Source of the DNA: Klebsormidium nitens
Taxonomy: Eukaryota; Plantae; Klebsormidiophyceae
Length of the DNA stretch: 43,540 bases
Direction of reading: 5' to 3'
Assembly: GCA_000708835.1 (NCBI GenBank)
Contig: DF237545.1
Location: forward strand, 1 to 43,540
Part shown: piece by piece, positions 4,042 through 43,540 of the stretch
Numbering within the stretch: position 1 is the stretch's first letter
Layout of the letters: every line of letters begins with the position of its first letter
The notes under the pieces: model-generated
The model's database searches: none
What the model was told of the DNA's origin: nothing
What the model saw: only the letters and a program-made list of their open reading frames with translations
Program-made: the position numbers and the translations under genes

Positions 4042-4784
4042 NNNNNNNNNNNNNNNNNNNNNNNNNNNNNNNNNNNNNNNNNNNNNNNNNNNNNNNNNNN
4101 NNNNNNNNNNNNNNNNNNNNNNNNNNNNNNNNNNNNNNNNNNNNNNNNNNNNNNNNNNNNNNNNNNNNNNNNNNNNNNNNNNNNNNNNNNNNNNNNNNNN
4201 NNNNNNNNNNNNNNNNNNNNNNNNNNNNNNNNNNNNNNNNNNNNNNNNNNNNNNNNNNNNNNNNNNNNNNNNNNNNNNNNNNNNNNNNNNNNNNNNNNNN
4301 NNNNNNNNNNNNNNNNNNNNNNNNNNNNNNNNNNNNNNNNNNNNNNNNNNNNNNNNNNNNNNNNNNNNNNNNNNNNNNNNNNNNNNNNNNNNNNNNNNNN
4401 NNNNNNNNNNNNNNNNNNNNNNNNNNNNNNNNNNNNNNNNNNNNNNNNNNNNNNNNNNNNNNNNNNNNNNNNNNNNNNNNNNNNNNNNNNNNNNNNNNNN
4501 NNNNNNNNNNNNNNNNNNNNNNNNNNNNNNNNNNNNNNNNNNNNNNNNNNNNNNNNNNNNNNNNNNNNNNNNNNNNNNNNNNNNNNNNNNNNNNNNNNNN
4601 NNNNNNNNNNNNNNNNNNNNNNNNNNNNNNNNNNNNNNNNNNNNNNNNNNNNNNNNNNNNNNNNNNNNNNNNNNNNNNNNNNNNNNNNNNNNNNNNNNNN
4701 NNNNNNNNNNNNNNNNNNNNNNNNNNNNNNNNNNNNNNNNNNNNNNNNNNNNNNNNNNNNNNNNNNNNNNNNNNNNNNNNNNNN
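4042..4784. other. assembly gap
   Basis: Run of N. Confidence 1.
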
Positions 4785-7228: not shown

Positions 7229-8178
7229 NNNNNNNNNNNNNNNNNNNNNNNNNNNNNNNNNNNNNNNNNNNNNNNNNNNNNNNNNNNNNNNNNNNNNNNN
7301 NNNNNNNNNNNNNNNNNNNNNNNNNNNNNNNNNNNNNNNNNNNNNNNNNNNNNNNNNNNNNNNNNNNNNNNNNNNNNNNNNNNNNNNNNNNNNNNNNNNN
7401 NNNNNNNNNNNNNNNNNNNNNNNNNNNNNNNNNNNNNNNNNNNNNNNNNNNNNNNNNNNNNNNNNNNNNNNNNNNNNNNNNNNNNNNNNNNNNNNNNNNN
7501 NNNNNNNNNNNNNNNNNNNNNNNNNNNNNNNNNNNNNNNNNNNNNNNNNNNNNNNNNNNNNNNNNNNNNNNNNNNNNNNNNNNNNNNNNNNNNNNNNNNN
7601 NNNNNNNNNNNNNNNNNNNNNNNNNNNNNNNNNNNNNNNNNNNNNNNNNNNNNNNNNNNNNNNNNNNNNNNNNNNNNNNNNNNNNNNNNNNNNNNNNNNN
7701 NNNNNNNNNNNNNNNNNNNNNNNNNNNNNNNNNNNNNNNNNNNNNNNNNNNNNNNNNNNNNNNNNNNNNNNNNNNNNNNNNNNNNNNNNNNNNNNNNNNN
7801 NNNNNNNNNNNNNNNNNNNNNNNNNNNNNNNNNNNNNNNNNNNNNNNNNNNNNNNNNNNNNNNNNNNNNNNNNNNNNNNNNNNNNNNNNNNNNNNNNNNN
7901 NNNNNNNNNNNNNNNNNNNNNNNNNNNNNNNNNNNNNNNNNNNNNNNNNNNNNNNNNNNNNNNNNNNNNNNNNNNNNNNNNNNNNNNNNNNNNNNNNNNN
8001 NNNNNNNNNNNNNNNNNNNNNNNNNNNNNNNNNNNNNNNNNNNNNNNNNNNNNNNNNNNNNNNNNNNNNNNNNNNNNNNNNNNNNNNNNNNNNNNNNNNN
8101 NNNNNNNNNNNNNNNNNNNNNNNNNNNNNNNNNNNNNNNNNNNNNNNNNNNNNNNNNNNNNNNNNNNNNNNNNNNNNN
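7229..8178. other. assembly gap
   Basis: Run of N. Confidence 1.
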
Positions 8179-11092: not shown

Positions 11093-11797
11093 NNNNNNNN
11101 NNNNNNNNNNNNNNNNNNNNNNNNNNNNNNNNNNNNNNNNNNNNNNNNNNNNNNNNNNNNNNNNNNNNNNNNNNNNNNNNNNNNNNNNNNNNNNNNNNNN
11201 NNNNNNNNNNNNNNNNNNNNNNNNNNNNNNNNNNNNNNNNNNNNNNNNNNNNNNNNNNNNNNNNNNNNNNNNNNNNNNNNNNNNNNNNNNNNNNNNNNNN
11301 NNNNNNNNNNNNNNNNNNNNNNNNNNNNNNNNNNNNNNNNNNNNNNNNNNNNNNNNNNNNNNNNNNNNNNNNNNNNNNNNNNNNNNNNNNNNNNNNNNNN
11401 NNNNNNNNNNNNNNNNNNNNNNNNNNNNNNNNNNNNNNNNNNNNNNNNNNNNNNNNNNNNNNNNNNNNNNNNNNNNNNNNNNNNNNNNNNNNNNNNNNNN
11501 NNNNNNNNNNNNNNNNNNNNNNNNNNNNNNNNNNNNNNNNNNNNNNNNNNNNNNNNNNNNNNNNNNNNNNNNNNNNNNNNNNNNNNNNNNNNNNNNNNNN
11601 NNNNNNNNNNNNNNNNNNNNNNNNNNNNNNNNNNNNNNNNNNNNNNNNNNNNNNNNNNNNNNNNNNNNNNNNNNNNNNNNNNNNNNNNNNNNNNNNNNNN
11701 NNNNNNNNNNNNNNNNNNNNNNNNNNNNNNNNNNNNNNNNNNNNNNNNNNNNNNNNNNNNNNNNNNNNNNNNNNNNNNNNNNNNNNNNNNNNNNNNG
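11093..11797. other. assembly gap inside the primase-helicase gene
   Basis: Run of N. Confidence 1.
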
Positions 11798-13378: not shown

Positions 13379-14749
13379 CTAGCTCCGTTTCCGCTTTCGT
13401 CCTACCGAACCACCTCCAGCATCGCTCTTCCATTCGAACCCGTCATAGAACATCTGCTCCACAGTCAGTTCGCGATCGGGCACGTGCGCGAGATGATAAC
13501 GCAGACGCTCGATGTGTGCGCTCATGCGGGCCTCCCACATAGATTGGTCCCGGATCACTGGCACTCCGATCTTGTTGTGCTTGAAGCAGCTTGGGTATCT
13601 GGTCCCGTCCGCAGATGTGAACCCGTCTGGATTGAACCGGAGCTGCACCTGGGGGCGGTTGCCCGCATCCTGGAAGAGCTCCATCAGCCTCTTGTTCTCA
13701 CACGTAGTGCTCCGGTGCTGATCTTCGTCGTTCTCACAGTGCACCGTATGAGTATACAAGTCCACGAAGATGTCGGGCCTCCTCCCCGAACAGCCCCCTT
13801 GGATCCGCTTGTCGAAGGTGATACCCGCATCCTCTGAAAGGACGCCTGCCGCCTCGATGTAATCAGTAAAGTGCTGCTCCTTGACCTTGTAGTTGCGAGA
13901 CACCTTCTCGCCTGGGAACAAGTGCACGAAACACCGCAGACAGTGTCCTTTGTAGCGCTCATGAACGGCCCTCGTACCGCACCCGTTAACGCACTTCAAG
14001 CTGTGTATGTCCAGCATATCATCGGACTTGCATTTGCAACAATGTGTAGCCTTGCCGCCCTCCAGGCCGAACGTAGGCTGCGACCTTCCACAGACGCACT
14101 TGGGGCTTTTTACGTCCACCATATCTTCAGACTTGCATTTGCTGCAGTGACTAGCCCTGCCGCCTTTGAGTCCGAAGTTCGGCTGCGAATTCCCACAGGT
14201 GCACCTCGCTGCCCTGACATCCGCCATGTCGACAGACCTGCAATTGTTGCAGTGAGTGGCTCTGCCGCCTGCAAGTCCAAACGAAGGCCTCGTCCCACAG
14301 GCGCACCTCGGGTGCCTAACGTCCACCATATCGTGGGACTTGCATTTGCTGCAGTGGGTGGCTCTTCCCCCTTCAAGTCCAAAGCTAGGCCGCCCCCTCC
14401 CACAGGCGCACATCGGGTCTCTTACATTCAGCATATGGTGGGACTTGCATTTGCTGCAGTGGGTCGCCTTGCCCCCTTCGAGTCCGAAACTAGGCCGCCC
14501 TTTCCCACAGGCGCATTTTGAGTGTCTTGCGTCGAGCATATCGTCGGACTTGCATTCGCTGCAATGGGTGGCCCTTCTCCCTTCGACTCCGAACGTAGGT
14601 TGCCTCCTCCCACAGGCGCACTTCGGATTCTGTACGTCCACCATACTGTTGGACTTGCATTTGCTACAGTGAGTCGCCTTGCCGCCCTTGGATCCAAAAG
14701 TAGATCGCGCCCTACCACAGGCACACTTCTGGCCGACTACTTTCACCAT
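13379..14749 (-). CDS. Cys-rich repeat (EsV-1-7-like) protein with a C-terminal restriction-like (PD-(D/E)xK/Vsr-type) endonuclease, NCLDV type
   Basis: Intact, intronless 456-aa ORF with seven ~35-aa repeats CxCGxxxPxFGLEGGxATHCSKCKSxxMxDV. These are followed by KVKEQ...FDKRIQGGCSGRRPDIFVD...CENDEDQH...CENKRLMELFQD...LRFNPD, a pattern I recognise from giant-virus endonucleases. Confidence 0.8.
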   Translation of the reverse strand: MVKVVGQKCACGRARSTFGSKGGKATHCSKCKSNSMVDVQNPKCACGRRQPTFGVEGRRATHCSECKSDDMLDARHSKCACGKGRPSFGLEGGKATHCSKCKSHHMLNVRDPMCACGRGRPSFGLEGGRATHCSKCKSHDMVDVRHPRCACGTRPSFGLAGGRATHCNNCRSVDMADVRAARCTCGNSQPNFGLKGGRASHCSKCKSEDMVDVKSPKCVCGRSQPTFGLEGGKATHCCKCKSDDMLDIHSLKCVNGCGTRAVHERYKGHCLRCFVHLFPGEKVSRNYKVKEQHFTDYIEAAGVLSEDAGITFDKRIQGGCSGRRPDIFVDLYTHTVHCENDEDQHRSTTCENKRLMELFQDAGNRPQVQLRFNPDGFTSADGTRYPSCFKHNKIGVPVIRDQSMWEARMSAHIERLRYHLAHVPDRELTVEQMFYDGFEWKSDAGGGSVGRKRKRS

Positions 14750-14914: not shown

Positions 14915-17900
14915 ATGGTCGATGCTAGGCGTACATCGGGTCTTTTCATTTCCTTACAACGCAATGTGCGCGCGCAGTGCGCGTCTGCATATGTAAACTT
15001 CAGAAAGATTAAGCACCCTGGACGACTCAGCATCTGGCTCTTGGGAGCGGGCAAGTCGAGAGAGCTATTCCATGGCCTCCTGCCCCGCCTCGCCCCCGAA
15101 GCCTCCGTCTGTCTGATCGCTCCGAACATCGCACTGGCGCGGAAGTACCACGAAGAGACCAAGAGGAAGGGCCTGGACTACGTCTGCTACCTCGACGAGC
15201 CTGGGGGGAAGATCAGCGCACGGCGGGTGGTGGTCTGTGTCAACTCCTTACCGAGAGTGCTGCCGCGCTTCGACATGGTGGTCATGGACGAGGTCAACTT
15301 CACGCTGACCAACATGGCGTCCACAGTTATGAAAGACAAGAAGCAGGTAAGAATGAGGTCGGAGGGTCGGACATGTCTCGGGCCCACCCATGACAAGGCA
15401 TTCGGTACCTTGGTCTTCGAGTGCCCGGCGATCATACTCTGTCGAAAAACGAGCTCTCTTTCGCTTGCAAGGTTTTCATGGCCCTGGAAGGGGTCGTGGC
15501 GGGCGCTAAGGCAGCGTTCCTGTGTGATGCCCACCTCAACTGCCCCCGTGTGGTGGAGTGGATCTAGGCCCTGCGGCACACAAGCCGCTTCTACACCATC
15601 CGGAACCGTGGCGTCTGGCCCTCGTCGCGAAAGGCCTTCATATTGCCGATGCCCGGGCCGTTGGTGGGAAGAGGGCAGCCAAAAGCCACATACTCTCTCG
15701 TGGTCGATGGTATCGTGGACCTCGTCGCAAGCGGGAAGACGGTCATGGTGAGAGAGCTGTCAGAAATTCGCACATTCCCACATGACCTGCCACGGGGCCA
15801 CCTCTTCCCCATCTTGAGCACACAGGGCCACAGGCCACAGAAAAAATAGCTTCCGAGATACAAGAAGGTTATAAATTTAGGAGAGTTTTTTTTCTTGACT
15901 CGTTTCGCTAGTCAGACCTTCGCACACCACCACCACGACGTGCCACGTGGCCACCTGAGCACCCAGGGCCACGGCCACAGAAAAAAAAGCTTCCGAGATA
16001 CAAGAAGGTTATAGATGATTTAGGAGAGTTATTTTTTCTTGACTCGTTTTGCTAGTCAGATCTTCGCACACAAAAACGACCTGCCACGTGGCCATCTCTT
16101 CTCCATCTTGAGCACCCAGGGCCACGGGCCACAGAAAAAATAGCTTCCGAGATACAAGAAGGTTATAAATTTAGGAGAGTTATTTTTTCTTGACTCGTTT
16201 TTGCTAGTCAGACCTTTGCACACCACCACCACGACGTGCCACGTGGCCACTTGAGCACCCAGGGCCACGGGCCACAGAAAAAAAAGCTTCCGAGATACAA
16301 GAATGTTATAGATTTAGGAGAGTTTTTTTTTTCTTGACTCGGTTTTGCTAGTGAGCTTTGCCAGCTGGTTGGTGTGTGCTGCACGTTAAGGATGGTTGTC
16401 AGATGACGAAGCTTTTCGAGCGACGCAGATACCCGCCACGAGTAAGACGTTCGTGGAGCTCCTGGAGGTGGAGTTCAAGGCCCGACTCCCGGGGAAGAAT
16501 CTCATCGCCTTCCACGGAGCTAAGAGAGAGGGGGCCGACAAGAGACTGCTGCAGCATGCGATTTCCAACCCGAACGATGCGCTTATCGCCGATTGCCTCG
16601 CATTCACGCCCACCATAGGCCCCGGTGTTTCTATCGAGAAGAAGGGGAGCTACGATTTGGTAATCGGGGTGGCGGTCAACTCCGACAACCACCCCGACGC
16701 CCAGGTGCTGATGCAGCAGATTCAGAGAGCTCGCGATGCCGGCGACATCCGGATTTACTACGGCGAGATCCAGAGCCGTCGGAAGGTCGCCTACCCTACC
16801 ACCAAGGAAGAGGTGTTCCAGATGCTAGAGAACAGCGATCTGCAGCTCGCAGACTTGATGCAAGGGGTCTCCGTGGACCATCTGGACATGCTGCGGGCTG
16901 CCCCCGGAGAGCGTGCTATCTATGACAGGAGCTCTGCAACGTGCAATCTGTACGCCAACAACCTGCTGGGCCGTCTACAGAGCCGGCAGTACTACATTCA
17001 TCTCTTGACAGAAGACCTTCGGCGACAGGGGGTGACTGTGGTCAACCAGTTGAACGTTCGAACATGGGGAGGGGATGCAGAAGTTGAGCTGGTGGCGAAA
17101 GAGGAGCTCGTCGACGAAACGATCGAGCAGTGGCGCGAGAGACACCTCGTCTCGTGGGAGCAATTTGAGCGGATAAGGGGAATGATGAGCTCTCCGTCCG
17201 GGGGCGTAAGCAGACAGGACGTCCTGAGGTATGAGATATTCGATGCAGCCGTTTTCTGCTACGGGATTCAGTATGAAAAGGTCGACCCCGAGTTCGTGGC
17301 TGAGTTCGTCCAGGGAAAGCACGCGAAGGACCTCATGACGAAATTCAAGAGCTACGAGAGGTAAGACTCCGTCCTCCCTCTGTGCACTTTCTGGTTTCTC
17401 CGGGGCTTTCTCGGCATGGTTTTACAACCTCTCGCGCTTGCATCGCATCTTTGAATTTCTGCGTGTGTGCAATGTACTATGAGGCAGAAGTCAGACTGAT
17501 GATGACGAGGGTTTGTCTTACAGGTTCGTGACTTCAACGTATGCCTCTACCATCGGGACCCTCAGCGCGGCTATCGAGGAGGGGGAGCAGAAGCGGAACA
17601 TCCAAGAGTACCTTGAAGTCAGGGATAGGTCGGCAAACGGGATCACGTATGCCTGGTGCGTGTTGGCAGCCTTAGTGGGTATACCTGCTGAGAAGGTTGA
17701 GAACACGGTGTTCGGGAGCTACAAGATTGTGGATGGACGGTTGGGGGAGGAGATGCTGTCCGCGGTCTTTGACATGGACGACTTTAACATGTCTGCTTCG
17801 CTCGAAACCCTCGAGAGGTTATTCAAGCCGCGGACGTCGTTCGCTGGGAAGGAACTGACGATCACACGGAGGAGGAACGTGATCAAGATGGTCTTGGAGG

Positions 17901-21869: not shown

Positions 21870-22910
21870 ATCCTCCAAAATATGACCGTGACATTACGGA
21901 TTGCCTCCTCAAAAAAGTGGACAGGACTGACTCGTGCCGCCAGATCCAACCGGCGGACAAGTCCTCGGCCCCCAGGGCCAACCGTCCACATTCTGACTGT
22001 GACATTACGGATTGGCTCATCCAAAATGTGGACAGTACTGGCTCGTGCCCCCAGGGCCAACCGTCCACAATCTGACTGTGACATTACGGATTGCCACCTC
22101 CAAAATGTGGACAGGACTGGCTCGTGCCCCCCGGGCCAACCGTCCACATTCTGACACTGACATTACGGATTGCCTGNNNNNNNNNNNNNNNNNNNNNNNN
22201 NNNNNNNNNNNNNNNNNNNNNNNNNNNNNNNNNNNNNNNNNNNNNNNNNNNNNNNNNNNNNNNNNNNNNNNNNNNNNNNNNNNNNNNNNNNNNNNNNNNN
22301 NNNNNNNNNNNNNNNNNNNNNNNNNNNNNNNNNNNNNNNNNNNNNNNNNNNNNNNNNNNNNNNNNNNNNNNNNNNNNNNNNNNNNNNNNNNNNNNNNNNN
22401 NNNNNNNNNNNNNNNNNNNNNNNNNNNNNNNNNNNNNNNNNNNNNNNNNNNNNNNNNNNNNNNNNNNNNNNNNNNNNNNNNNNNNNNNNNNNNNNNNNNN
22501 NNNNNNNNNNNNNNNNNNNNNNNNNNNNNNNNNNNNNNNNNNNNNNNNNNNNNNNNNNNNNNNNNNNNNNNNNNNNNNNNNNNNNNNNNNNNNNNNNNNN
22601 NNNNNNNNNNNNNNNNNNNNNNNNNNNNNNNNNNNNNNNNNNNNNNNNNNNNNNNNNNNNNNNNNNNNNNNNNNNNNNNNNNNNNNNNNNNNNNNNNNNN
22701 NNNNNNNNNNNNNNNNNNNNNNNNNNNNNNNNNNNNNNNNNNNNNNNNNNNNNNNNNNNNNNNNNNNNNNNNNNNNNNNNNNNNNNNNNNNNNNNNNNNN
22801 NNNNNNNNNNNNNNNNNNNNNNNNNNNTTTCAAAATGTGGACAGGACTGGCTCGTGCCCCCAGATCGAACCGGCGGACAAGTCCTCGGCCCCCAGGGCCA
22901 ACCGTCCACG
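21870..22910 (+). repeat. family-3 array 1: 79-bp units with a palindromic core GTCCACATT...AATGTGGAC; spans a gap
   Basis: Core starts at 21984, 22063 and 22142 (period 79). The array resumes after the Ns at 22828. Confidence 0.95.
22177..22827. other. assembly gap within family-3 array 1
   Basis: Run of N. Confidence 1.
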
Positions 22911-29336: not shown

Positions 29337-32300
29337 TTAACGTCCGGTATGGATATTGGTAAAATTTTGCATTACCGTCAAGTTCTTTGGGGGCTCCGGA
29401 CCGCCTCTTTGATACCCACTCATAGTGCCAACGGCGGAAGAGCCTCCTGTAGTGGGAGGAGCGTCATAGGAATCCGCTGAGCCCGTCAACGAAGTGGTTG
29501 CTGCAGGACCCTGGGCGACCGGTGGATCCGTGTTCACATGGCGACCACTGGTGGGGAAGAAGACCTTTTCTGCGGAGGGCGGCTGCAATCTTGTAATACT
29601 TATCAGTTGCTCAATGCGCTGATGGACCTGCGGTAGACATGGAAAGATGCAACCGTCACTCAGCCGATCTGCCGAGATCTTACCTCCGGATTAAGGAGGA
29701 AAGGTGTCGTTCTGATATGCTATTTCCGGCGCATACTGTCTTCAAGATACCTTTCAGCCCTTGGGAAATTCTTGCTGTTTCCCAAGTAATGAGCGGTCGT
29801 TACAAGAGCTCAATGCCGAAGTTAGCCTTCTCAAATTTGAGCACGGTTGTTAAGCTTAAATAAAAAGCAGAAGACAAGAACACAAGCATCAGTATATTTG
29901 ATGTCAGTACTGCTTGTCTATGTAGATCAGTGATCAACAGCATGTCTTCTTGAGATCCTAGCCCTTTTTTTTGAGGACTAGAACCTGGCCCAGATTGATG
30001 GACTTGTATCTAAGGTATCATGTCTGCAACACCACTCAAATCACCTTCTCTGAACTTTAATTGTGTTGCATAGAATTAGCTTCGTGGGAGTGTTGGCAAA
30101 TTGTGATTCGTATTGAACTGGATGAAAAGAGGGAGCAAGATGGGAAAAGGGGAGAACGCAAGAATGAAAGTGCGGATCAAGCAATCTTAACAACAGAAAT
30201 TGTGTTGACGCGCACCTGGGCAGCTAGAGGACGTGCGGTAGGTTCATGCTGGTTCATGCATTCAACGGCCAGCTGAATGATTCCAATGGCCTGTTGAGGA
30301 TGAAAGTCATTCCCCAAGGCCGGGTCCACCAGAGCCAGAGGCTGGTGCTTGTTCTCAACGACCTGTGAACGTTGCAGAGCAGCCTGCTTCAGTGCTACAT
30401 GGACCAACGCTGGCTTGCAAATCAAGAGATTGATACAGTTGGCCATGTGTCACACTTCGTATAAGTACCATTTCTAAATAACATTACAAGAGGTCCTGAA
30501 GGTCTATGCAAAGGACAATGTAGACAAGCCGCAGGATGCATTTGCACGTTCTTCATCAAACGTTCCATTCTATGAGCAGGCTGGCAAGGACAGGAAGATT
30601 CTGATAATTTCGTAATTCCTCATCCATCCGAGCAAAGGACACGTACAAAACAAGCACAAAAGGCATAAAATAAATATCTAGATCGAGTTGCAACGCACCC
30701 AGTTGCGCAGGGTTACCGAATCATTCCCCATTTGGAAGGTACAAGGACGTCCAGTGACCAACTCGGACAGAAGCACGCCGAGGCTGTAGATGTCGGTATA
30801 CCTACTAACCTGAGAGAGGACACCATCACATGCGTTGCAGACACAAGGAAGCAGTGACAACAAGTATAGATACAATTTTGAACGCAAGACTTAGCCTGAA
30901 CCCCTTTTCAACAACCAGGTTCTTGAAGCCTGCCAAATGAAAAAACATCGGAGAGCGAGGCTCGATCTGATGACTGGGATCATACTGGGAGAGAAAGTAT
31001 AAAGACCCGACCAATAGGTACCCGGAAGTGAACTTACCTGTCCAGACTGAAGGTACTCGAGCGCAATGTAGCCTGAACATTGGAAATAAAACGCTTTCAG
31101 CCCACAGGAGCAGACTGGAGCAAAGATAAGGATTGAGAAGGACCGAGAGATTCACCCTCTCTAAGCAGGAATGCTGCGACAATGGGATTTTTGACTACAT
31201 ATATTTAAATCAAAGTTGGTGGGCAATGCTCGACCGCGCACACATTGCAGAAGTACAGGAAGTCCTGACGTTTGCGTGTCCTTCGTCTCTTTTGAGATTC
31301 TCTGGTGCACTGGATTTAAAATTGGCCAGGCGAAACAGGGTTGCTTTGGTTTCTGGTCACCACATTGTGGTATCTTTCAGAAGGACCACTTGTCCCTAAG
31401 TAGTGCGCCCAATGCAGCGAGAACATTGTAGACAGAACTTGAAGCTCGCACTCTGAAAGGAATCCTTACCCCTGGTACCCAAAACGCGAGTCCGAGCTGA
31501 CATGGCACCATCTTCAAACTTGGCCACCCCAAAATCACTCAGCTACAAGCAGAACAAAAAAGTGCCAATTGTCTGCATGTGCGTACTCAAATCGATAAAC
31601 ACCGTTTAGCCAGAGCTTGTCGGTTGATTGTCCACTGCTGAAGTATTATTATTGAATGTACTGCCAAATGACTAGCAGGCCCAGGAAATTTTTGAATCCA
31701 TGAACAAACACACTTTTCTTTTATGAACCTTCTGAACATATTGCCAGGCTTGACAAATAACTTCCAAGAGCGTATCAGGAACCGTAATTTTGACAACAAG
31801 TACCGCACAATCTCAGACTTGAGCACCAGGTCCCGCAATGGAGCACCCACAGAAGACTTGGATCACGTGCTGTTTAGAATCAATTCAGAATCTGACGTTG
31901 GAGCATTCTCACCTTGGCAGTAAGTCTGTCCACGTCGGCAAAAAGGACATTCGCGCTCTTGATGTCCCTGGAGTTGGCTCACAAGAGTCGATGTCAGGTG
32001 GTCTACGTGGCAATGCTAGAACTGATATCGCTACTGATGCTGGATCACCACAACATTCTCATTTTGGTTCTGGCAAGGCCAACAAACTGCTGGGTAGTCC
32101 AGCGAGTCACAAAATATGTGATCGGGAATATTTGATGGGCAATAAGCAACTTTTTAAGACAGTTGATCAATCTCACCAACCACGTAAAGACCCGCTACAG
32201 ATTGTAGCCTCCGAATTCTGAATCATCGCACTAGCAACTCTTGCGAGTTTGCTTTCTTCGACAAGCACGTAGGTAGCTCAGCTTTTGGAGATCGATTGGT

Positions 32301-35300
32301 GCCCGTCCTTCACTTATGCCGTGGCTTGGTACAAGTATATGTTCTAATTATTTGACAAACCGCTCAGCCGATGACTTGAAGACCTCTTACGTGTATGGCA
32401 ACCCACTTTCTCCTCCTTTTTCAACAGAGGAGACATCATAGCATTTTCTTGAAGTTCAGACTTGATTGATTCACCTGTGCATAATAGGGGGTTCAATGCC
32501 GTCGTGCAGATACTCCAGGCCAATTGTGACGTAGAGTGCTGTTCGCAGGCGCTTGGACCAGTCAAATCTTTCAGGGCCTGCAGTAGTCAGCAGCACGCAC
32601 CCTTCACAACGTGCGAGCGACTCATGGAACGGTGGGCGACATAACACAAAGAAAGTGGGGTATGGGATTGAAGTATCAAGCATCAGATTTTACTACTTGT
32701 TGTCCATTTCAATGTTAGGAAACTCATCCAATAAGCACCCAACGACCATCAAGCCTTACCATGGAGTGCTTGAAACAGATTCCCCCCCTTGCAAAACTCA
32801 AGGACAATAATCCGTTCTGTTCCCGCTATGGCGTACCCAAGCATGGACACGAGGTACTTGTGGCGCAAACTGCTCATGATAGCCATCTCAGTGTAAAAGC
32901 TTTCGTTGTTGGGCCCCTGCAACAGAATACTCTTGCGTTCCAATTTCTAAGCGCCGGTGATGATTTTGATTGATGAATTTTTCACTTTCAGGAAAGAGGT
33001 CATCTGAAAATGTCATATATCTCCTGCCGTCTAAAAGGGAGGTTTTGCCCTTATTGGGAGGTTTTGCCCTTACGGACGACGCCCTATTCTCCGATTATTA
33101 TATTATCGTATATGGAGGGCTATCGCTACTCCAATAATCATGGATTTCAAAGAGCTAGCCCTACACCGTTTCCAGGCTTTGAGATGCATGAACAGCTCGA
33201 GTGTTCCTCACGTCCACCAGTTTCTAGACAAACATGGCATCAAAGACATTAATGAAGATTTAGTAGAATCTGACTGCAAACAACCGCTTTTAATTTGCCG
33301 CTTATTACACTGGCGGCCGACTGTCTTGATTGTTTACCTTTTTTCCTTGTCATTATGGCTTTCGTAAATAACACACAAAATGGTTCACACGCTGTGTTGA
33401 ATTCTTATTTGAAGCTTTCTTATTCAGAGCGGTGTTTGTGGGCTCTGTATACCGCTCACGCACTGTAGCAATGAGGCCTCGATTGACCAGGAAAGTTTCA
33501 TGAGTTTTCTAGGATAAAGAGGGGCGATCTATTCAAATATCTTGACACACAAGAAAAGGCTCCATTTTCAAAGTTGCGTGCTCACATTTACAGGGTCGGA
33601 CTGCAAAACCTTGACCGCCATAGATGTGCCATCCACCTGTGTTCCTTTGTAAACTGCACCAGGGCGGGGGGTGGGGCATTCGTTTCTGCGTTCTGGAAGG
33701 TCTTTAAAAATGGCTAGCATTGCAGTTTGCGATTTGGTAGAACCTACATGCGGCTGTAGAGAACAAGCTTTAGGCAGCAGCTGAGACAAGAGCACGCGAT
33801 GAGGCGCAGCCCGAAATACTCGATTTGCAGATATTTATGTCAAGAATTGGAAACTCAGGAAAGCTATCAAGCTCCAATGTTAATGAGAGCCATTTTTCTA
33901 GCCAGAACCACAAAGCTTTCGATCCAGACAGATGACTCTTCTTACATCGATCATATGTTGCCCAAGAGGCTCGGGAAATATGATTAGACAGCTGCAATTC
34001 CACTTCGATTCATTGCATCCTTACCTTTTGAAAAGCCTCCTTGGCCAACAAGGTTCGACATACTGAACCCATTTGTTGCGGACAGCACCTCCTCATAAGG
34101 ATAAATTCTGCTTTTGCTATCTCTGGCAGAGCTTGCAAATGATGTGCTGCTTCCACCTGATGTTGGTAGGAGGATATCAGCCTGAGGATTGGTGGAATCA
34201 AGAAAGTGCTTGAGACCTGAAAAGGATATGTCTCGACGGCAAAGGGTGTGAAAAATGGATGCCAAGGTGACAGACTGGAAGACAAATAGAAAAAGAGCTG
34301 AAACCATGTTGTCAAAAGACTCTTTCCTGGATGGCTGTGTCCACACCATCCTTGGAAGCCCAGTTGACAAATGATAAAGTAAACACAGCAGCCACTCCTG
34401 AATTGCCCCAGTTATTGCTGATCAGTTCCCTATTTATTGCTGATCCTGAGGGAAGTCATGCAATCAATAGATTTTGCTTTGAGACATTGATGGTTGAGGA
34501 ACATGATCTCTGCAAGATCAGAGGTGGACGCAATACCAAGTCATGGCAGGGCCAAGCTCATTACTTCTCTTGACCATTTAAGCATTTGCAACAGCTGGAG
34601 TTTGATTGGACTTTGATTATGCTACAGCTTACCAGCCTGCTTAGTTGGAGCAGCAGGGTGGTGCGGCACTGCAGCCTCTTTGGGTGCTTCATGGGTTGGC
34701 AGGTCATTGGAACGCTCCTTTTTCCGCCTTTGGTTTTTGAAAAGGCAACAGAGGACAATGCCGATAATTGCAGTGGTGACAACCGCCGCACCAGCCACAC
34801 AACCCACAATTATGCCAACTTTGGATCCACTGGAGCCTGCATATACGATTACTGGAGGAGGAGGAGCAGACGCAGGCGGGCGAATAGGGGGTGCAGGCGT
34901 TGCGGCAGGGGGCGTAGGCGTGATGGCCGGGGTCGTAGGTGTAGCACAACTGCTCACAGTGTCGACGAGGTAGTCATTGCAGCACGACCCTATAGGGCTG
35001 GAACTTGGACAAGAGCAAGTGCCGACCACATTGGCATATGGTCCAACAGTACATGTGCTAGTATCTGGTTGGCAGCAGGCGCCGTACGGGCTGGGGCTGC
35101 TGCAGGTTGAGTAGTACGTGGAGGAGGAGCCCGGGCCCGGTGCTTGGCATAGAGGGCCACTGGAACCGGCGGGACAGAAGTAGTACTGTGAGAAGCTGGT
35201 GCAACAGGAGAAAACGGGCAGGCTGTCTGGGCAGGGCACCCCTCCGAGGTTGCAGCTCTTCTTGAGCACAATGCCCAAGCAAGTCGATCCTGATGTAGAG

Positions 35301-37105
35301 CAGCATCCGGTGTAGAGATTCTGGGGGCAATACCCCGAAGGAGCACTCGTGCAGGTGTACGTAGTGACCAGTTCCCGGCCTTGGATGTGGTGTGCCGACA
35401 TAAACCCTGCAAGGAGCAAACCGAAAAGACATCAAAACACTGCTATCAAATGGAAAAGCTTGTAGCAAGGACTTTGGAAGCCCAGGTTGCTGCATTCAGC
35501 CTCCAGAGTTCCTTACAAACTCATGCTGTAGGCATCTCAAGCGTTTGCAATCGCAGGCGTTTTTTTGGTGCATATCGTACTTTCTGTTCCGACCTTGTCC
35601 CCCGTTCCCAATAACAGATCCTTCAAAGTGCTGATGGGTGATGGAAAAGTGTACCAATCGCAGAGCAACTAGCTGATGGCCTAGGTACAACAAATTATGG
35701 TGCCCGCATTTGTTCGCAGACCCCTGGAGCCCTACTTCTGCAGAGGACGGAGAGAGGTACCGAGCCACAAGCGTGCCATTTGACTTCAAAGCCTTGTTAT
35801 TTAATATGTGGTGATTACATATTGACAACATGAGGACCTTCTCAGTTCAAGTGTGAACCAATCATAGACTCACATCATCCAGCAGGTGCATTGTATTGTA
35901 ATGCCAGCTGAGTGCATTGCATCTGGGAAAGAAGCAAAGCATGTCACTAACTAAGCTTCTGATGAGTAGGAGCAATAGCTAGCAGGTTCTACTGGGACAA
36001 GATGCTTAAAGGTGTGGTTCTCTGATTATAGTTTTCCACCCACCGTGCTCACAGTGACTGTCGCAATCTGGAGAACTCAGAGTACCTTAGCACACAAAAA
36101 AGCCCGACTTACCTGTTAGGTTGAGGACAGTCTGGCCTGCGACGCCCTCCTGGAACACTCTGTCCCCAACCGGAGAATGCCCCAGATCAGATTGCGCCTG
36201 GCAGAATCCACTCTGGCACACTGCTGCGCGGCAATAAATGTTTCTTTCACAAAAGGCACAAGTGGAGGCTCCTCCATCAGACCCTTGTGTGTATGATGCA
36301 GCCGGCCATGGCAGGCTAGTGAACAGTTAGGATCTTCTCAGCCTAAGCTAAATCGCTCAAGAAATAGCAGACCAGATAGACTCCTTCGTAAAGATCCTTC
36401 ATGGTCAATCAGGTAGGCTCTTGAGATGCTCATTCTCTGTCTTAAAGAGAGAGCTGCTTCCATTTGATTGGGCTATGACCCTGATGACCCAATTCAAAAA
36501 AAAAAGACAGTCGACAAGACCTGACACAAAATCAACTCAGATGCTGCAAGCTCGGATAGGAATGCTCCAGGCATCCCCTCAGGTTGTAAGCCTTCAATCT
36601 AAGAAAGTACTTGAAAATTTGTGTCCGAGTGACTGTTTTCTTTGCTCCTCTTGGACATATTGCATCAAAGCTGGCAGTCCTTAATTATCTAGAAGCAGCA
36701 GAGAAACACGGTCAAAATAACACCTAAATGAGAGCTCTCAATTCTCCGCAGTCAGTCTGAGATGCACATTTTGCATATGCAACTTCTTGAACATGTCAGA
36801 CAGCAAACTCTACATCATAGACTGATGAGCGGAAAGTCAGAGAAGCCTTGCCCTGCACAGTAACAGGAAGTGAAGAGCACCCCACCCAGGATACATGCTA
36901 AGCAGACCGTATGCTACTTCTTCTCGACAGGATTTCTTGCCCGCGAAAGTATCTGTGGAATACTTCTGGACTGCTGCCAATACTTTGTTGCATTGCAACT
37001 ATGAGTTGGAGTCTCACCCAAATATAACAGGAGCAGCAACGTCCACTTTGAAGCTCCCGTCTGGCTCACCAGCACACCCTTCACAATCTTCCGTATCATC
37101 GTCAT
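29337..37105 (-). CDS. receptor-like Ser/Thr (RD) kinase with a Cys-rich ectodomain, Pro-rich stalk and TM helix; about 12-13 exons
   Basis: Signal exon 37105-37018, exon 36223-36113, and ectodomain/TM exon 35406-34633. Kinase exons give VGQGGFSK|VYKG...MAVK, FYTEMAIMSSLRHKYLVSMLGY, LEYLHDGIEPPIMHR|DIKSANVLF (31967-31913), LSDFGVAK (31542-31470), GYIALEY, DIYSLGVLLSELVTGR and AVECMNQHEPTARP. The last exon stops at 29337. Junctions are GT-AG. The exon(s) between 34632 and 34181 are not fully resolved. Confidence 0.85.
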
Positions 37106-37891
37106 TTTCGCTGCAAAGGACTAAGTAAAAAGTGGAAGTCCTACTAGAGTGGTTGCAAGCTCTTCCAAACGGAGGCGGTGTAGTTGTTCAGAGGAGCTCA
37201 GCTTTGTGAGGTGACGGCTGTTGAGGTGACACGAGCTCACTGACAAAGGAGTGCTTGACCACTCAGCTAGGCCCTAGTTTTTGGAGCTCAGAAACCAGTC
37301 CGAACATTTCCCCTTGGATGGATGTGGACCCGATGACACAACTTGATACATGCCAGAACAATCGCGTTCACGTATCCCGAACGGCACCCCACACGCACGC
37401 GAAGGGGCAAAACCACATTCCCGCACTAGCATCGTAGGGAGTGGCGTTACACCAAAACGAGGAAGACTCGTTGGCCCTTTGTACGTTGCACGCCACGTAC
37501 CGCTCAGCCGTCAGCATCGCTGTAAATCTGCGATTCCGACCCCTAGAGTACCGTACTTGGTTGTTTGCCGACTGGACTTCCGACTAGGAAGCTACATTCG
37601 GGTGAAACGACACCATCAATCCGGACCCGTACAACCAAACCAGAAGCAGCCGATCAACAGGGGGGGTGGACGGCAGCTCCGGGCAGACTCGGGTTCCTAT
37701 TCCATACCGTTAGCTCCAATGTGCCGGCATTTGTGTTTTTGATTTGGTGAGCGCTATTGGTGCCACGTGGAGCTCCTGTGTGCGCTCCGCTTGGCTGACG
37801 AATGCACAAATGTCTTCCCGGAAGTGTTGAAACGAAGACCGTACCGTAGTTTCGGTAAGGTCCTTTGCGACGCGACGCCTAGTATCTCAGC

Positions 37892-37930
37892 TCAGCCAAT
37901 CACAGTATCCTAGGTTCAGCCAATCACAGT
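37892..37930 (+). promoter_or_regulatory. duplicated CCAAT box (TCAGCCAATCACAGT x2) in the divergent intergenic region
   Basis: 15-bp exact direct repeat at 37892 and 37916, about midway between the two divergent start codons. Function is inferred. Confidence 0.4.
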
Positions 37931-38778
37931 GTAAGAAATCATCTGACCGTTCGATCAAGTATCGACGACCCCCGTGGAAGATTCTGCCTGTCAACACATT
38001 TCGTTCATCACAGTTCCCGGGTGATGATGTCGACACTTTTTTTAAACTCCGGTACATACCTCTGGTGCGTTGAACAACGTTCGGCACCCCGAGCTGCAGC
38101 ACCGGGACTACGGCACACCGACAAACGGAAGGGGAACCCCTCGCACCTTACGTACGGATCAAAGGATTGAACACACGATTTTTCTGTCGAAAACGAGCCT
38201 GCGGAGATAGTTCAGTCAGCGCGTTACCGTACCACGGTCGTTTCACACCGATCTCTTTTCTTTAGGGTTAAAAAATAATAATCTAGGGTGTGAATTGTGA
38301 AAAACAGAATTGACTCCACGGTGTCCTTGCCAACTACCCTCAGGGCCCCAATTAATGTGAAATGGCAATCGAGAGTACCTAGAACTAATTTGTACGGTTC
38401 GAAATGCAAACGAAAATGGTCTAAACTCGATTACCGTATTTCGCACCTGGTGGTGTGAAATGACCGCGGCGGTATGGTATCTAAGAGCATGTGTCTCGGT
38501 GGCTCCCTCAATACCGTAGTGACCAATACGGTCCTGTTTTCAGGCCTCTTCTGTGCGGATAAAGAGTAGATCCTTCATGAACTCAGCTGCTGACACTGAT
38601 CCTTGGCAAGGGAGAATGGTTGCTGTTGGTCCTTCACAAATCAGGGATAGGTACCATACTGCTCTTCAGGAACACCGTACGCTCTTCACGCACACCAAGC
38701 GACACGGAGCGATAGCTGCGACGCCCAAGTTCCAGTAAACTACCAGTTTCTCTATCAAGGTCTTGTGCAGCAGTTTTC

Positions 38779-41177
38779 ATGATGAAAACTCCGAAAGGCG
38801 CGCCGATGAGGCAAACAGGAGCTCCGAAGTGGACGCTGCTGCTCCTGCTCCTATGCTATGGTGAGGGTCAAGAATTTGCTAATTGCAATGCAGAAAGCAC
38901 TGTCACCACGTACGAACCATCTGTATTTTGTAGAAGATACTTTGAGCGTTGTCAAAATAAATGTTGAGGGGTTTTCTCAGCAATGTCCTGGGTTGATGCT
39001 CTTCATCTTCTGTCACCGCGCAGGGTTATATAATTCTCACTCATCAGTCTCTGACGCAGAATTTGCAGTCGAACATGGTCAAAATGTCGCAAGGGCAATT
39101 TTTGTGTATCAAGCCCAAGTGATGCGAATAGAGGGTTTCTTTTAGGTGTCATTTGGACTGAGTCCCTATCAAAGATCAGGGTTGCCTTCTCATTGTAATG
39201 TTAGTTTCTGATCATAGCAAGTTCTACAGTCCTCAGGCACAGACCGTCAAATGTGTATCTAGCTCAAAGTTACGATTTGAGTGAACTACTTTGGATTGTA
39301 CACACGCTTGCAGTCATTGGTCATTGGATGTGTAGTGCTGATTGTCATTTATGTGGTGGTCTGTAGAATTGGAAGATTTGCTTAATCTGAACATTTTCCT
39401 CCCCACCTATTCACGAACCTGCCATGGCCGGCTGATCATACACACCTAAGGGTTTACTGGAGGAGCCGCCACTTGTAGATTAGTTTGAAAGAATCTTGTG
39501 GTGCCGTGCAGCAGTGTGCCGGAGTGGATTCTGCCAGGCGCAAACTGATCTGGGACCTTCTCAAGTCGGGGACAGAGTGTTCCGGGAGGGCGTAGCAAGC
39601 CAAAGTATTCTCAACCTGACAGGTAAGTGTTGTCGCTTAGGTGCCCCCCGAGTCCTTCAGAACGTAGAATTACTTGGGGTAGAATTTCGTAAATTGGTCC
39701 ATTTTAAGCTTTTTAGCCTACTGGCCTAATAGAACCTGCTAAGCACTATTCTTCTCACAGAAAACTTACACATTGGCACTCTTTGCTTGCCTCAAGATGC
39801 GCTGCACTTGCTGGATGACTGCACATGTCTATTATTGGTTCAGGCTTGAATTGAGGAGGTCATGTTCTCAATATGTAAACCCTACATGTGAAATTATAAG
39901 GCTTTAACTTCAACTGGGGCTGCTTGCAGTTCTGTCTTCCTTTCCATTGGTTGCCGAAGTAGGGCTCCAAAACCTGCAAACAAATGCTAATTAACGACAT
40001 TATAATTCGATGTACGTTAGGCCCCCAGTCAGTCGCTCTGTGATTGAGGCAATATCCTTCATACACAGATCATCGTCCGGGAGGGCCTGGCATCAAAAAT
40101 CTAGGACAAGGTTAGAATAGAAACACAATTGGCACCAAAAAAAACACCTGCAACTGCAAAAGCTTAAGATGCCTAAAACAGGGGTTTGTAAAGAACCTGG
40201 AGGCCGAATGCCAATTTGCAACCTTGGGTTCCGAAGTCCTTAATAAGCTGTTCCAATTAATCGCAGTCCTTTCATGTCTTTCCCCTTTCCTCATTGCAGA
40301 GTTTATGTCGGCACACCACATCCAAGGCCGGGAACTGGTCACTACCTACACCTGCACGAGTGCTCCTTCGGGGTATTGCCCCCAGAATCTCTACACCGGA
40401 TGCTGCTCTACATCAGGATCCACTTGCTTAGGCATTGTGCTCAAGAAGAGCTGCAACCTCGGAGGGGTGCCCTGCCCAGACAGGCTGCCCGTTTTCTCCT
40501 GTTGCACCAGCTTCTCACAGTACTACTTCTGTCCCGCCGGTTCCAGTGGCCCTCTATGCCAAGCACCGGGCCCGGGCTCCTCCTCCACGTACTACTCAAC
40601 CTGCAGCAGCCCCAGCCCGTACGGCGCCTGCTGCCAACCAGATACTAGCACATGTACTGTTGGACCATATGCCAATGTGGTCGGCACTTGCTCTTGTCCC
40701 AGTTCTAGCCCCATAGGGTCGTGCTGCAACGACTACCTCGTCAACACTGCGAGCAGCTGTGCTACACCGCCAGCATATACGACCCCGGCCATCACGCCTA
40801 CGCCCCCTGCCCCAACGCCTAGGCCTCCTGCCCCAACCCTGGCGCCCCCTGCCCCCACGCCTGCGCCTCCTGCCCCAACCCTGGCGCCCCCTGCCCCAAC
40901 GCCTGCGCCTCCTGCCCCAACCCTGGCGCCCCCTGCCCCAACGCCTGCGCCTCCTGCCCCAACCCTGGCGCCCCCGGCCCCAACGCCTGCGGCCCCTTCC
41001 CCTACGCCGGTGCCCCCCGTCCTAACATCTGCACAAACTTCTAGCAGTAGCGCGCTCTCCACCCCTGCCGTCCCGTCGCCCCCAGTTGCTATTTCAGCTT
41101 CTGCCTTACGTATTATGTCTTCAAAGGTCGTTACTGGAGCATTTTTGGCTGGTGTTCTCGGCTGGATGCTCTTCTGA
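38779..41177 (+). CDS. secreted Cys-rich, Pro-rich protein with a probable GPI-anchor signal; kinase-less paralog of the adjacent receptor kinase
   Basis: Exons 38779-38860 (signal ...KWTLLLLLLCYG|), 39512-39622 and 40300-41177, all phase 1 and matching the kinase gene's exons. Same 20-Cys domain, then PAPT repeats, a Ser-rich linker and a terminal hydrophobic tail (VVTGAFLAGVLGWMLF-stop) with no cytoplasmic domain. Confidence 0.85.
40824..40991 (+). repeat. 42-bp coding tandem repeat (PPAPTLAPPAPTPA)x4, AGP/extensin-like stalk
   Basis: Four near-identical units, visible in both DNA and translation. Confidence 0.9.
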
Positions 41178-42859: not shown

Positions 42860-43540
42860 TCACACCGATGAAATCGCTATGAATGGAGAAGTGGCCCAAG
42901 TGGCACAGGCAACGTGGCCATGAGGCCTAGCAACTACAATGACGCTAGTATGCATCAAATGCACAGCCCTAACGTGGCGCTGATGTATGCTCAAGGCTGT
43001 GCTGCGACGATCATCCGTGGCATGACACAGCTCGGCGGCGCGCACCTCGTCCTTCTCCACGCCATTGCCGCTGTAGTGGCACACACCCAGGTTGAATTGC
43101 GCCCTCGCGTCATCCTGCGCTGCTGCCCATAAGTATTGACAGGCACCCTGCAGCGCCTCGCACCCGCTCAGGTCCAGGCTCGTCATCCCCGTCAGCCGCC
43201 GGACCGACTCCGGCAGGCTCCGCAGCGCCAGGCACAAGCTCAGGTCCAGGCTCGTCATCCCCGTCAGCTGCCCGACCCACTCTGGCAAGCTCTGGAATGA
43301 ACTCCTATCTGAAATCAGACCGAAAAGGGAATACAAATCCAGGGTCCTGAGCGGCAACAATTGCTTCATGAGCCCTGTCAGCGCCCCGACCGACTCCGGC
43401 AGGCTCGTCAGCGCCCTGCACCGGCTCAGGTCCAGGCTCGTCAGCCCCGTCAGCTGCCCGACCGATTCCGGCAGGCTCGCCAGCGCCGCGCACCCGCTCA
43501 GGTCCGGCTCGTGAGCACCATCAGCCCCCCGATCCACTCC
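42860..43540 (-). pseudogene. LRR + Sel1-like repeat gene fragment, frameshifted, 5' part off-window
   Basis: LRRs of type LDLSGCxALxSLPESVGQLTGLTS, followed by a Sel1-like AQFNLGVCHYSGNGVEKDEVRAAEL. Near 43505, AGC-CGG-ACC stands where other units have AGC-CTG-GAC, a 1-nt loss that shifts the frame. Confidence 0.65.

Follow-up and report, generated by a model that had tools for sequence, protein, structure and literature searches.

What does it take to found and maintain a matched pair of a receptor kinase and a kinase-less twin? The partnership of receptor kinases with kinase-less relatives, many of them GPI-anchored, is a central theme in land-plant signalling and immunity, and the origin and upkeep of such pairs have been inferred mostly from angiosperms. 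Among lineages with canonical plant receptor kinases, that of Klebsormidium is one of the earliest to branch. We analysed a stretch of 43,540 nucleotides of Klebsormidium nitens (contig DF237545.1; hereafter, the window), in which two head-to-head genes have three exons in common. An earlier note on this DNA had described them as a receptor kinase and a GPI-type paralog that arose by an old inverted duplication, with one exon homogenised by gene conversion.

Gene A lies on the minus strand (ATG at 37105) and gene B on the plus strand (ATG at 38779). Both start codons agree with those given previously, as does the 1.67-kb spacer: the divergent intergenic region (37106-38778) is 1673 nt long and holds no homology between the copies, with an identity of ~50% upstream of the two ATGs in global alignment. 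Exon 1 (37018-37105 in gene A, 38779-38860 in gene B) carries the start codon and a signal-peptide-like hydrophobic run, ending in gene A at a phase 1 donor, G/GTGAGA. Exon 2, of 111 nt in each gene, encodes a two-Cys module with a GDRVF.EG motif in gene A (36113-36223; CAGCAG tandem acceptor, GTAAGT donor) and was placed in gene B (39512-39622) by sequence reading and alignment to its gene A counterpart. Exon 3 of gene A (34633-35406) encodes a 20-Cys domain, a short Pro-rich stalk, a putative 27-residue hydrophobic transmembrane helix, the basic residues KNQRRKKE and the start of the juxtamembrane region. Exon 3 of gene B (40300-41177) encodes the 20-Cys domain (to ~40768), a Pro/Ala/Thr/Ser stalk and a 16-residue hydrophobic C-terminal tail, with a TGA at 41175-41177. 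The predicted proteins are ~650 aa (A) and ~356 aa (B). No further copies of the Cys exon were found elsewhere in the window, and neither Rfam nor a tRNA scan gave any match within it.

Beyond exon 3, gene A is predicted to continue on the minus strand through ~10 small exons that encode an RLK/Pelle kinase. A strong donor at 34633 (G/GTAAGC) and the acceptor at 34216 are compatible in phase, which predicts a splice between them; if intron 3 were retained, a stop would follow 3 codons on. Our hand model of the kinase part (30177-34216), built from six-frame reading with GT/AG phase bookkeeping, consists of exons 34216-34025, 33653-33592, 32916-32760, 32577-32475, 31967-31913, 31542-31470 and 31072-31038, followed by three uncertain exons (30809-30717, 30600-30562 and 30362-30177), which may instead be 30809-30699 spliced straight to 30362. 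Protein searches were made exon by exon for both genes, and the joined gene A CDS was checked for frame, stops and motif order. This CDS of 1968 nt has no internal stops, and the motifs GxGxF, VKVL (with the lysine), HRDIK, DFG and ALEY follow one another in canonical order and spacing, as in kinase domains of the RLK/Pelle (IRAK-type) family. Exon pieces match the kinases of BRI1 (E = 6e-8), CERK1 (1e-5), BAK1 (9e-4) and also FLS2 in the PDB, and among solved structures the N-terminus of the CERK1 kinase is most similar to exon 4. Because the single kinase exons are short, Pfam reaches only E = 0.008 on them. With these matches and all catalytic motifs in order, the minus-strand gene is, as proposed earlier, a plant-type RLK/Pelle receptor kinase, predicted to be made as a single polypeptide.

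The plus-strand gene had been taken to be kinase-less, and this is borne out: tblastn and blastn detect no kinase remnant downstream of gene B, whose stop codon follows directly after the hydrophobic tail, leaving no cytosolic residues. By inspection, the C-terminus resembles a GPI signal, with S-A-S, an 8-residue spacer and the 16-residue hydrophobic tail up to the stop; the GPI call is a rule-of-thumb reading of these features. We detect no significant homology, against shuffles, between this tail and either the transmembrane helix of gene A or the tail of the relative described below. The stalk is 85% P, A, T or S (98 of 115 residues) and is built on the repeat unit PAPTPAPPAPTLAP, encoded by a 42-nt tandem repeat (40801-41017; 5.2 copies, 93%) that is not present in gene A. 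Chimeric arabinogalactan proteins (AGPs) are recognised by a signal peptide, a region of >50% Pro/Ala/Ser/Thr with AP/SP/TP dipeptides and, in most cases, a GPI signal, and the gene B sequence has this composition together with a signal-peptide-like run and a GPI-like tail. Gene B is a kinase-less, putatively GPI-anchored paralog of gene A.

The domain that the two proteins share is 155 residues long and arranges its 20 Cys in four CP..CC..C units with the spacing C-x7/8-CC-x6/10-C. Neither this domain nor its one relative has a Pfam family match at E <= 10, and the domain has no match among PDB sequences. Among 1.84 billion representatives, the only relative is GAQ87093.1, also from K. nitens (266 aa, 53-56% identical, E = 8e-36). 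This protein, like gene B, is kinase-less with a terminal hydrophobic tail, which argues that the kinase-less form is conserved and not a decaying fragment. Two metagenome scans for relatives gave chance matches only, three matches from a word-based protein search were proline-rich noise, and the ESM Atlas yielded no usable match; an AlphaFold2 model from the three-sequence alignment was unusable (pLDDT 33). A likeness of CPxNL..CCS..G..C to hevein (CBM18) has no support from Pfam (E <= 10) or the PDB. The same blank results speak against a LysM, malectin or DUF26 ectodomain, and Pfam, blank at E <= 10, likewise against the S-domain family of SRK/SLG (B-lectin, S-locus glycoprotein, PAN). By its sequence, then, this is a previously undescribed Cys-rich domain without a Pfam or PDB family.

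Divergence between the copies is uneven beyond chance along their length. A repeat search recovers inverted-repeat arms of 524 nt with 95% identity (34938-35461 and 40245-40768) and of 143 nt with 85% identity (36107-36249 and 39486-39628), and picks up exon 1 and the introns as weaker arms. In global alignment, exon 1 is 73% identical, intron 1 60% and exon 2 86.5% (15 differences between 39512-39622 and 36223-36113; dS 0.33, dN 0.105). Intron 2 is 67% identical overall and 76% in its last 50 nt; its last 100 nt are at 80% and the rest at 65%. The Cys exon (40300-40768 versus 35406-34938) reaches 97.4%, with 12 differences in 469 gap-free nucleotides and a longest identical run of 215 nt (40485-40699), in agreement with the dozen or so differences in ~455 nt and the run of ~200 nt first counted by eye. 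The signal exon, the 111-nt exon and the adjacent intron are indeed more diverged, and this per-exon comparison of identity and dS departs from the uniform pattern of a simple recent duplication. The background dS of ~0.33, with introns 60-67% identical, fits the proposed old inverted duplication. Within the Cys exon itself, dS is ~0.04 over 40302-40700 and returns to 0.35 over 40701-40766, the last 22 codons of the Cys domain. Since dN is low throughout the compared coding segments, purifying selection acts on both copies and only silent sites show the drop.

The homogenised tract spans 399 nt, at 40301-40699 in gene B and 35007-35405 in gene A, with 4 differences in all and an identical core at 40485-40699 (35007-35221 in gene A). 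At its 5′ end it begins at the splice acceptor, with 40293 and 40300 as the final sites of difference before it, and the next 45 nt have none where ~5 would be expected at background. At its 3′ end it stops within exon 3, where differences resume at 40700, 40706 and 40712. A run of 215 nt among 580 coding nucleotides with 27 differences has P = 4.5e-5 by run-length permutation, a fragment long enough for ectopic gene conversion under a Sawyer-type fragment-length criterion. Third positions differ at 4 of 133 sites in the tract versus 12 of 60 outside it (Fisher P = 2e-4), and when only third positions are counted, the run is 71 long (P = 0.008). The tract has a GC3 of 0.65, little more than its neighbours, so a clear footprint of biased conversion is lacking. 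The earlier claim of a homogenised exon therefore holds for these ~400 nt and fails for the whole exon and the whole Cys domain, whose last 22 codons are as diverged as the background.

With this heterogeneity in identity and dS and the permutation and Fisher P values, the best reading of the A/B pair, compared here within one genome, is that old inverted paralogs underwent ectopic gene conversion. We consider it likely that the pair, now at a silent divergence of ~0.3-0.4, was founded long ago when the first three exons were duplicated in inverted orientation, and that a recent DNA-level ectopic conversion between the inverted copies overwrote ~400 nt of the Cys exon. Conversion would have occurred recently at least once and possibly twice, as the 215-nt core is identical and 4 differences fall in the other 184 nt. 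The tract probably ends at the intron for lack of enough similarity between the introns to support heteroduplex extension.

The same 5′ boundary could be explained if the donor had been a spliced transcript of one paralog, with a cDNA or RNA template that ends the tract at the exon end, since exon 2 takes the place of the intron in such a template. The limit at most 7 nt from the splice acceptor and the clean 45 nt beyond 40300 are what such a template would leave, but exon 2 was not homogenised (dS 0.33), both genes keep their intron, and the higher identity in the last 100 nt of intron 2 looks as if older DNA-level tracts had sometimes entered the intron. A divergence barrier to heteroduplex extension accounts for the boundary more simply, and we regard an RNA-templated event as unlikely. 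It is still less probable that a short-read assembler put one near-repeat consensus through both loci. The window is a gapped draft with four N runs, all of which fall outside 28-43.5 kb, and the 215-nt run exceeds typical k-mers; however, 12 sites in the exon still differ between the copies, and the flanks are unique, well diverged and gap-free nearby. At the 10-13% by which coding sequence diverges in the background, the two loci would yield distinct k-mers, and merging would not be expected. A collapse would need true copies that were already nearly identical.

Least probable of all, in our judgement, is that no conversion took place and that silent sites are held by RNA structure, splicing enhancers or extreme codon bias, or lie in a mutational cold spot. 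The tract does open at the exon edge, the home of splicing enhancers, and GC3 is slightly raised, yet constraint of this kind would have to hold silent change down ~8-fold across 133 codons and then disappear partway through one exon and one domain, with dS back at 0.35 and dN still low. Exon 2 and the kinase exons have no such effect. As the 3′ end of the tract falls inside coding sequence where protein constraint is unchanged, conversion is favoured over selection.

Under the favoured reading of duplication followed by conversion, what would the pair do? The first 133 ectodomain residues of A and B differ at one position, so both ectodomains should bind the same partner. We infer that gene B would serve gene A as a co-receptor, a ligand-presenting protein or a decoy, located at the cell surface or in the wall. 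The earlier note had pointed to CERK1-LYM2/CEBiP and FER-LLG1, and these analogies carry over in design only, because the domain here is neither LysM nor malectin. CERK1 with CEBiP/LYM2 does combine a receptor kinase with a GPI-anchored protein (putatively anchored here) bearing the same type of ligand-binding module, which there is LysM. These partners are not known to be adjacent genes kept alike by conversion.

The S-locus receptor kinase and S-locus glycoprotein (SRK/SLG) of Brassica are a better and the closest precedent, with a receptor kinase beside a closely linked kinase-less ectodomain paralog and conversion between the ectodomains. Such conversion is documented, and in a B. rapa S-54 mutant SLG and the S domain of SRK are 100% identical (PMC4596330). 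SLG is secreted, whereas gene B is putatively anchored; the S-domain (B-lectin/S-locus glycoprotein/PAN) is unrelated to the 20-Cys domain; and SRK/SLG belongs to an angiosperm mating system, whereas the present pair is head-to-head and inverted in a streptophyte alga. The DUF26 proteins, described as a land-plant family, likewise place a Cys-rich ectodomain on both RLKs and kinase-less proteins, with GENECONV-detected conversion among tandem copies (PMC6368629). Their spacing is C-x8-C-x2-C, unlike the four units found here, which have no DUF26 match. Finally, gene B resembles the chimeric AGPs (fasciclin-like, phytocyanin-like and xylogen-like) in its putative signal peptide, Cys-rich module, AP/TP stalk and GPI-like end; its folded module falls outside the known classes, and its glycosylation and anchoring are putative.

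Gene conversion between close paralogs is common, and neutral conversion between close inverted repeats also occurs; the evolutionary mechanism itself is therefore not new, and a known kind of event is seen in a new setting, on a previously undescribed Cys-rich domain. The locus displays how such a pair may be born, with three ectodomain exons duplicated inversely beside a kinase, and how it may be homogenised on a continuing basis, here within a streptophyte alga and in a domain lacking any database description. Only tentatively, we suggest that Klebsormidium already has the design of a receptor kinase with a GPI-anchored twin, here with a lineage-specific 20-Cys module of undescribed structure, and that recurrent conversion of the binding exon keeps the ligand match. 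As part of the same suggestion, a crossover at the 400-nt identity could flip the 4.8-kb segment between the copies, which, if true, would give the kinase the promoter and 5′ exons of the anchored form and vice versa. The gene pair offers a compact test case for whether the design is older than land plants and for what the ligand of this orphan Cys-rich module is. Near the midpoint of the intergenic region, a 15-mer with a CCAAT box occurs in two exact copies (37892-37906 and 37916-37930). Elsewhere, the window contains intron-rich genes, an EsV-1-7 repeat ORF and LRR genes.

The first three exons of a minus-strand receptor kinase gene (gene A, ATG at 37105) and a plus-strand kinase-less paralog (gene B, ATG at 38779) are mutual inverted copies with divergent transcription. 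A repeat search of the window recovers inverted arms at 34938-35461/40245-40768 (524 nt, 95%) and 36107-36249/39486-39628 (143 nt, 85%), while weaker arms cover exon 1 and portions of both introns. When the minus copy is reverse-complemented and globally aligned to the plus copy, identity is 73% in exon 1, 60% in intron 1, 86.5% in the 111-nt exon 2 (15 differences), 67% in intron 2 (76% in its last 50 nt), and 97.4% in the first 469 nt of exon 3, which holds 12 differences and no gaps; homology is absent upstream of the ATGs. The longest identical run spans 215 nt (40485-40699). On the 3' side of the matched exon 3 segment, a 9-nt indel is followed by 52 nt at 90%, beyond which homology disappears in a proline-rich region. 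The inverted pair with a near-identical Cys exon described in the earlier note is real and statistically solid, and the alignment reproduces all of its figures, including the difference count and the identical run. Four N runs of 651-950 nt (4042-4784, 7229-8178, 11093-11796 and 22177-22827) show that the scaffold behind the window is a gapped draft, and all of them are distant from the pair.

Exons 1 and 2 of gene A (37105-37018 and 36223-36113, minus strand) are the counterparts of those of gene B, and exon 3 (35406-34633) encodes the Cys domain common to both. A short stalk rich in Pro then leads into a hydrophobic helix of 27 residues and a basic stop-transfer stretch, and the exon closes with a strong donor. 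A six-frame reading places a full set of kinase subdomains 3' of this exon on the same strand, in ~10 small exons reaching ~30177. Our hand model, with consistent GT/AG phases, comprises 1968 nt and 655 codons with no internal stops and has GxGxF, the VKVL lysine, HRDIK, DFG and ALEY at canonical distances, an alternative model being equally good for the last three exons. In exon-by-exon searches of both genes, single exons of gene A match the kinase domains of BRI1 (6e-8), BAK1 (9e-4), CERK1 (1e-5) and FLS2 among solved structures. These matches to plant kinases and the ordered catalytic motifs support the proposal that gene A is a receptor kinase. Gene A would previously have been classed as proline-rich or unknown.

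Gene B consists of exons at 38779-38860, 39512-39622 and 40300-41177 (plus strand), with all introns GT-AG and phases consistent. Its third exon encodes, in order, the 20-Cys domain, a stalk, a Ser-rich stretch and a 16-residue hydrophobic tail, with the stop codon directly after. The stalk is made of 5.2 copies of a 42-nt repeat and is 85% Pro/Ala/Ser/Thr; by this composition, together with the signal and hydrophobic tail, gene B looks like a chimeric arabinogalactan protein. No kinase-like sequence was found downstream, in keeping with the earlier description of gene B as the GPI-type paralog. A CAGCAG tandem acceptor before exon 2 is kept in both paralogs (39509-39514, plus; 36226-36221, minus), and since either AG preserves the frame, two isoforms one alanine apart are possible.

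Silent divergence gives good support to gene conversion between the receptor kinase and its paralog, which lacks the kinase and is probably GPI-anchored. By the Nei-Gojobori method, dS and dN between the copies are 0.33 and 0.105 in exon 2, 0.07 and 0.007 in exon 3 at 40302-40484, 0.02 and 0 at 40485-40700, and 0.35 and 0.04 at 40701-40766. Silent divergence is thus about eight-fold lower across 133 codons and is back at background within the same exon and protein domain, with strong amino-acid constraint on both sides of this 3' edge. Third-position differences number 4/133 inside the tract versus 12/60 outside (Fisher P = 2e-4), and a permutation test gives P = 4.5e-5 for an identical run of 215 nt when 27 differences are spread over 580 coding nt; together with the drop in silent divergence, these tests uphold the conversion claim. 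The tract occupies ~400 nt (gene B 40301-40699; gene A 35405-35007). Its 4 differences are confined to the first 184 nt, which may reflect two events. Outside the tract, dN/dS is well below 1 in both copies, which makes gene B a working gene rather than a decaying fragment. The simplest account of these sequences is an old inverted duplication, with silent divergence of about 0.3-0.4, followed by a recent non-reciprocal transfer of ~400 nt of exon 3.

The tract begins within 7 nt of the splice acceptor (aligned differences fall at 40293, 40300 and next at 40346) and ends inside exon 3. A cDNA-templated event is an unlikely alternative source that would produce an equally sharp 5' edge at the acceptor, but exon 2 is not homogenised. 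The preferred reading of the 5' limit is a divergence barrier, the introns being too dissimilar for heteroduplex extension. The last 100 nt of intron 2 are 80% identical versus 65% elsewhere, which fits older tracts extending slightly further.

The shared domain contains 20 cysteines in four C-P-x(6-7)-C-C-x(6-10)-C units. For this domain Pfam offers no family at a cutoff as loose as E <= 10, the PDB and the ESM Atlas contain no matching sequence, and AlphaFold2 with a three-sequence alignment gives an unusable pLDDT of 33. Searched exhaustively with phmmer, 1.84 billion representatives yield only one relative (E = 8e-36): GAQ87093.1 (KFL_003310050), a hypothetical Klebsormidium nitens protein of 266 aa; metagenome scans returned chance matches only. 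GAQ87093.1 is 53% identical to both copies, keeps all 20 Cys, carries the exon 2 motif RVF.EG and terminates, as gene B does, in a hydrophobic tail, which makes the kinase-less form a conserved architecture. If the window is from K. nitens, this protein would be a third member of the family, at an unlinked locus.

Brassica SRK/SLG is the nearest precedent, in which a receptor-kinase ectodomain and a linked kinase-less paralog exchange sequence by conversion (PMC4596330); conversion has also been reported among receptor kinases with the Cys-rich DUF26 domain and secreted relatives of these (PMC6368629). The present locus lacks the domains that define these two families and so belongs to neither. 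The design is alike, whereas the domain is new and the host is an alga; the conversion mechanism is of a known kind, and the ectodomain and lineage are new.

Both genes are intact, with a common promoter-side spacer, and their ectodomains differ at 1 of the first 133 residues. A functional partnership is plausible: both proteins would bind the same extracellular partner, with gene A signaling via its kinase and gene B, presumably lipid-anchored to the outside of the membrane and carried on a long, putatively glycosylated stalk, capturing, presenting or sequestering that partner. In this one genome, conversion may be upheld by selection or may be an ordinary outcome of close inverted repeats. 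Two exact copies of a CCAAT-box 15-mer (37892-37906 and 37916-37930, starts 24 nt apart) lie almost exactly halfway between the divergent start codons, where ~0.1 matches are expected by chance, and could possibly be a shared promoter element.

Elsewhere in the window, an intronless 456-aa ORF (13379-14749, minus) with seven cysteine-rich EsV-1-7 motifs (Pfam E = 5e-35) adjoins an ORF (14915-15751, plus) with a weak match to a herpesvirus-type origin-binding protein (E = 1e-6); the two look like what is left of a phaeovirus-like giant virus inserted into the genome of a streptophyte alga. A 531-codon open frame (707-2299, minus) has plant-type leucine-rich repeats throughout (LRR_1 E = 5e-27) and is probably the ectodomain exon of a further receptor gene. 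Finally, an open frame running past the window end (42863-43540, minus) combines RPS4B-like LRRs with a Sel1 repeat and is made of 72-nt tandem units with 82-87% matches (tandem repeats at 43150-43540).
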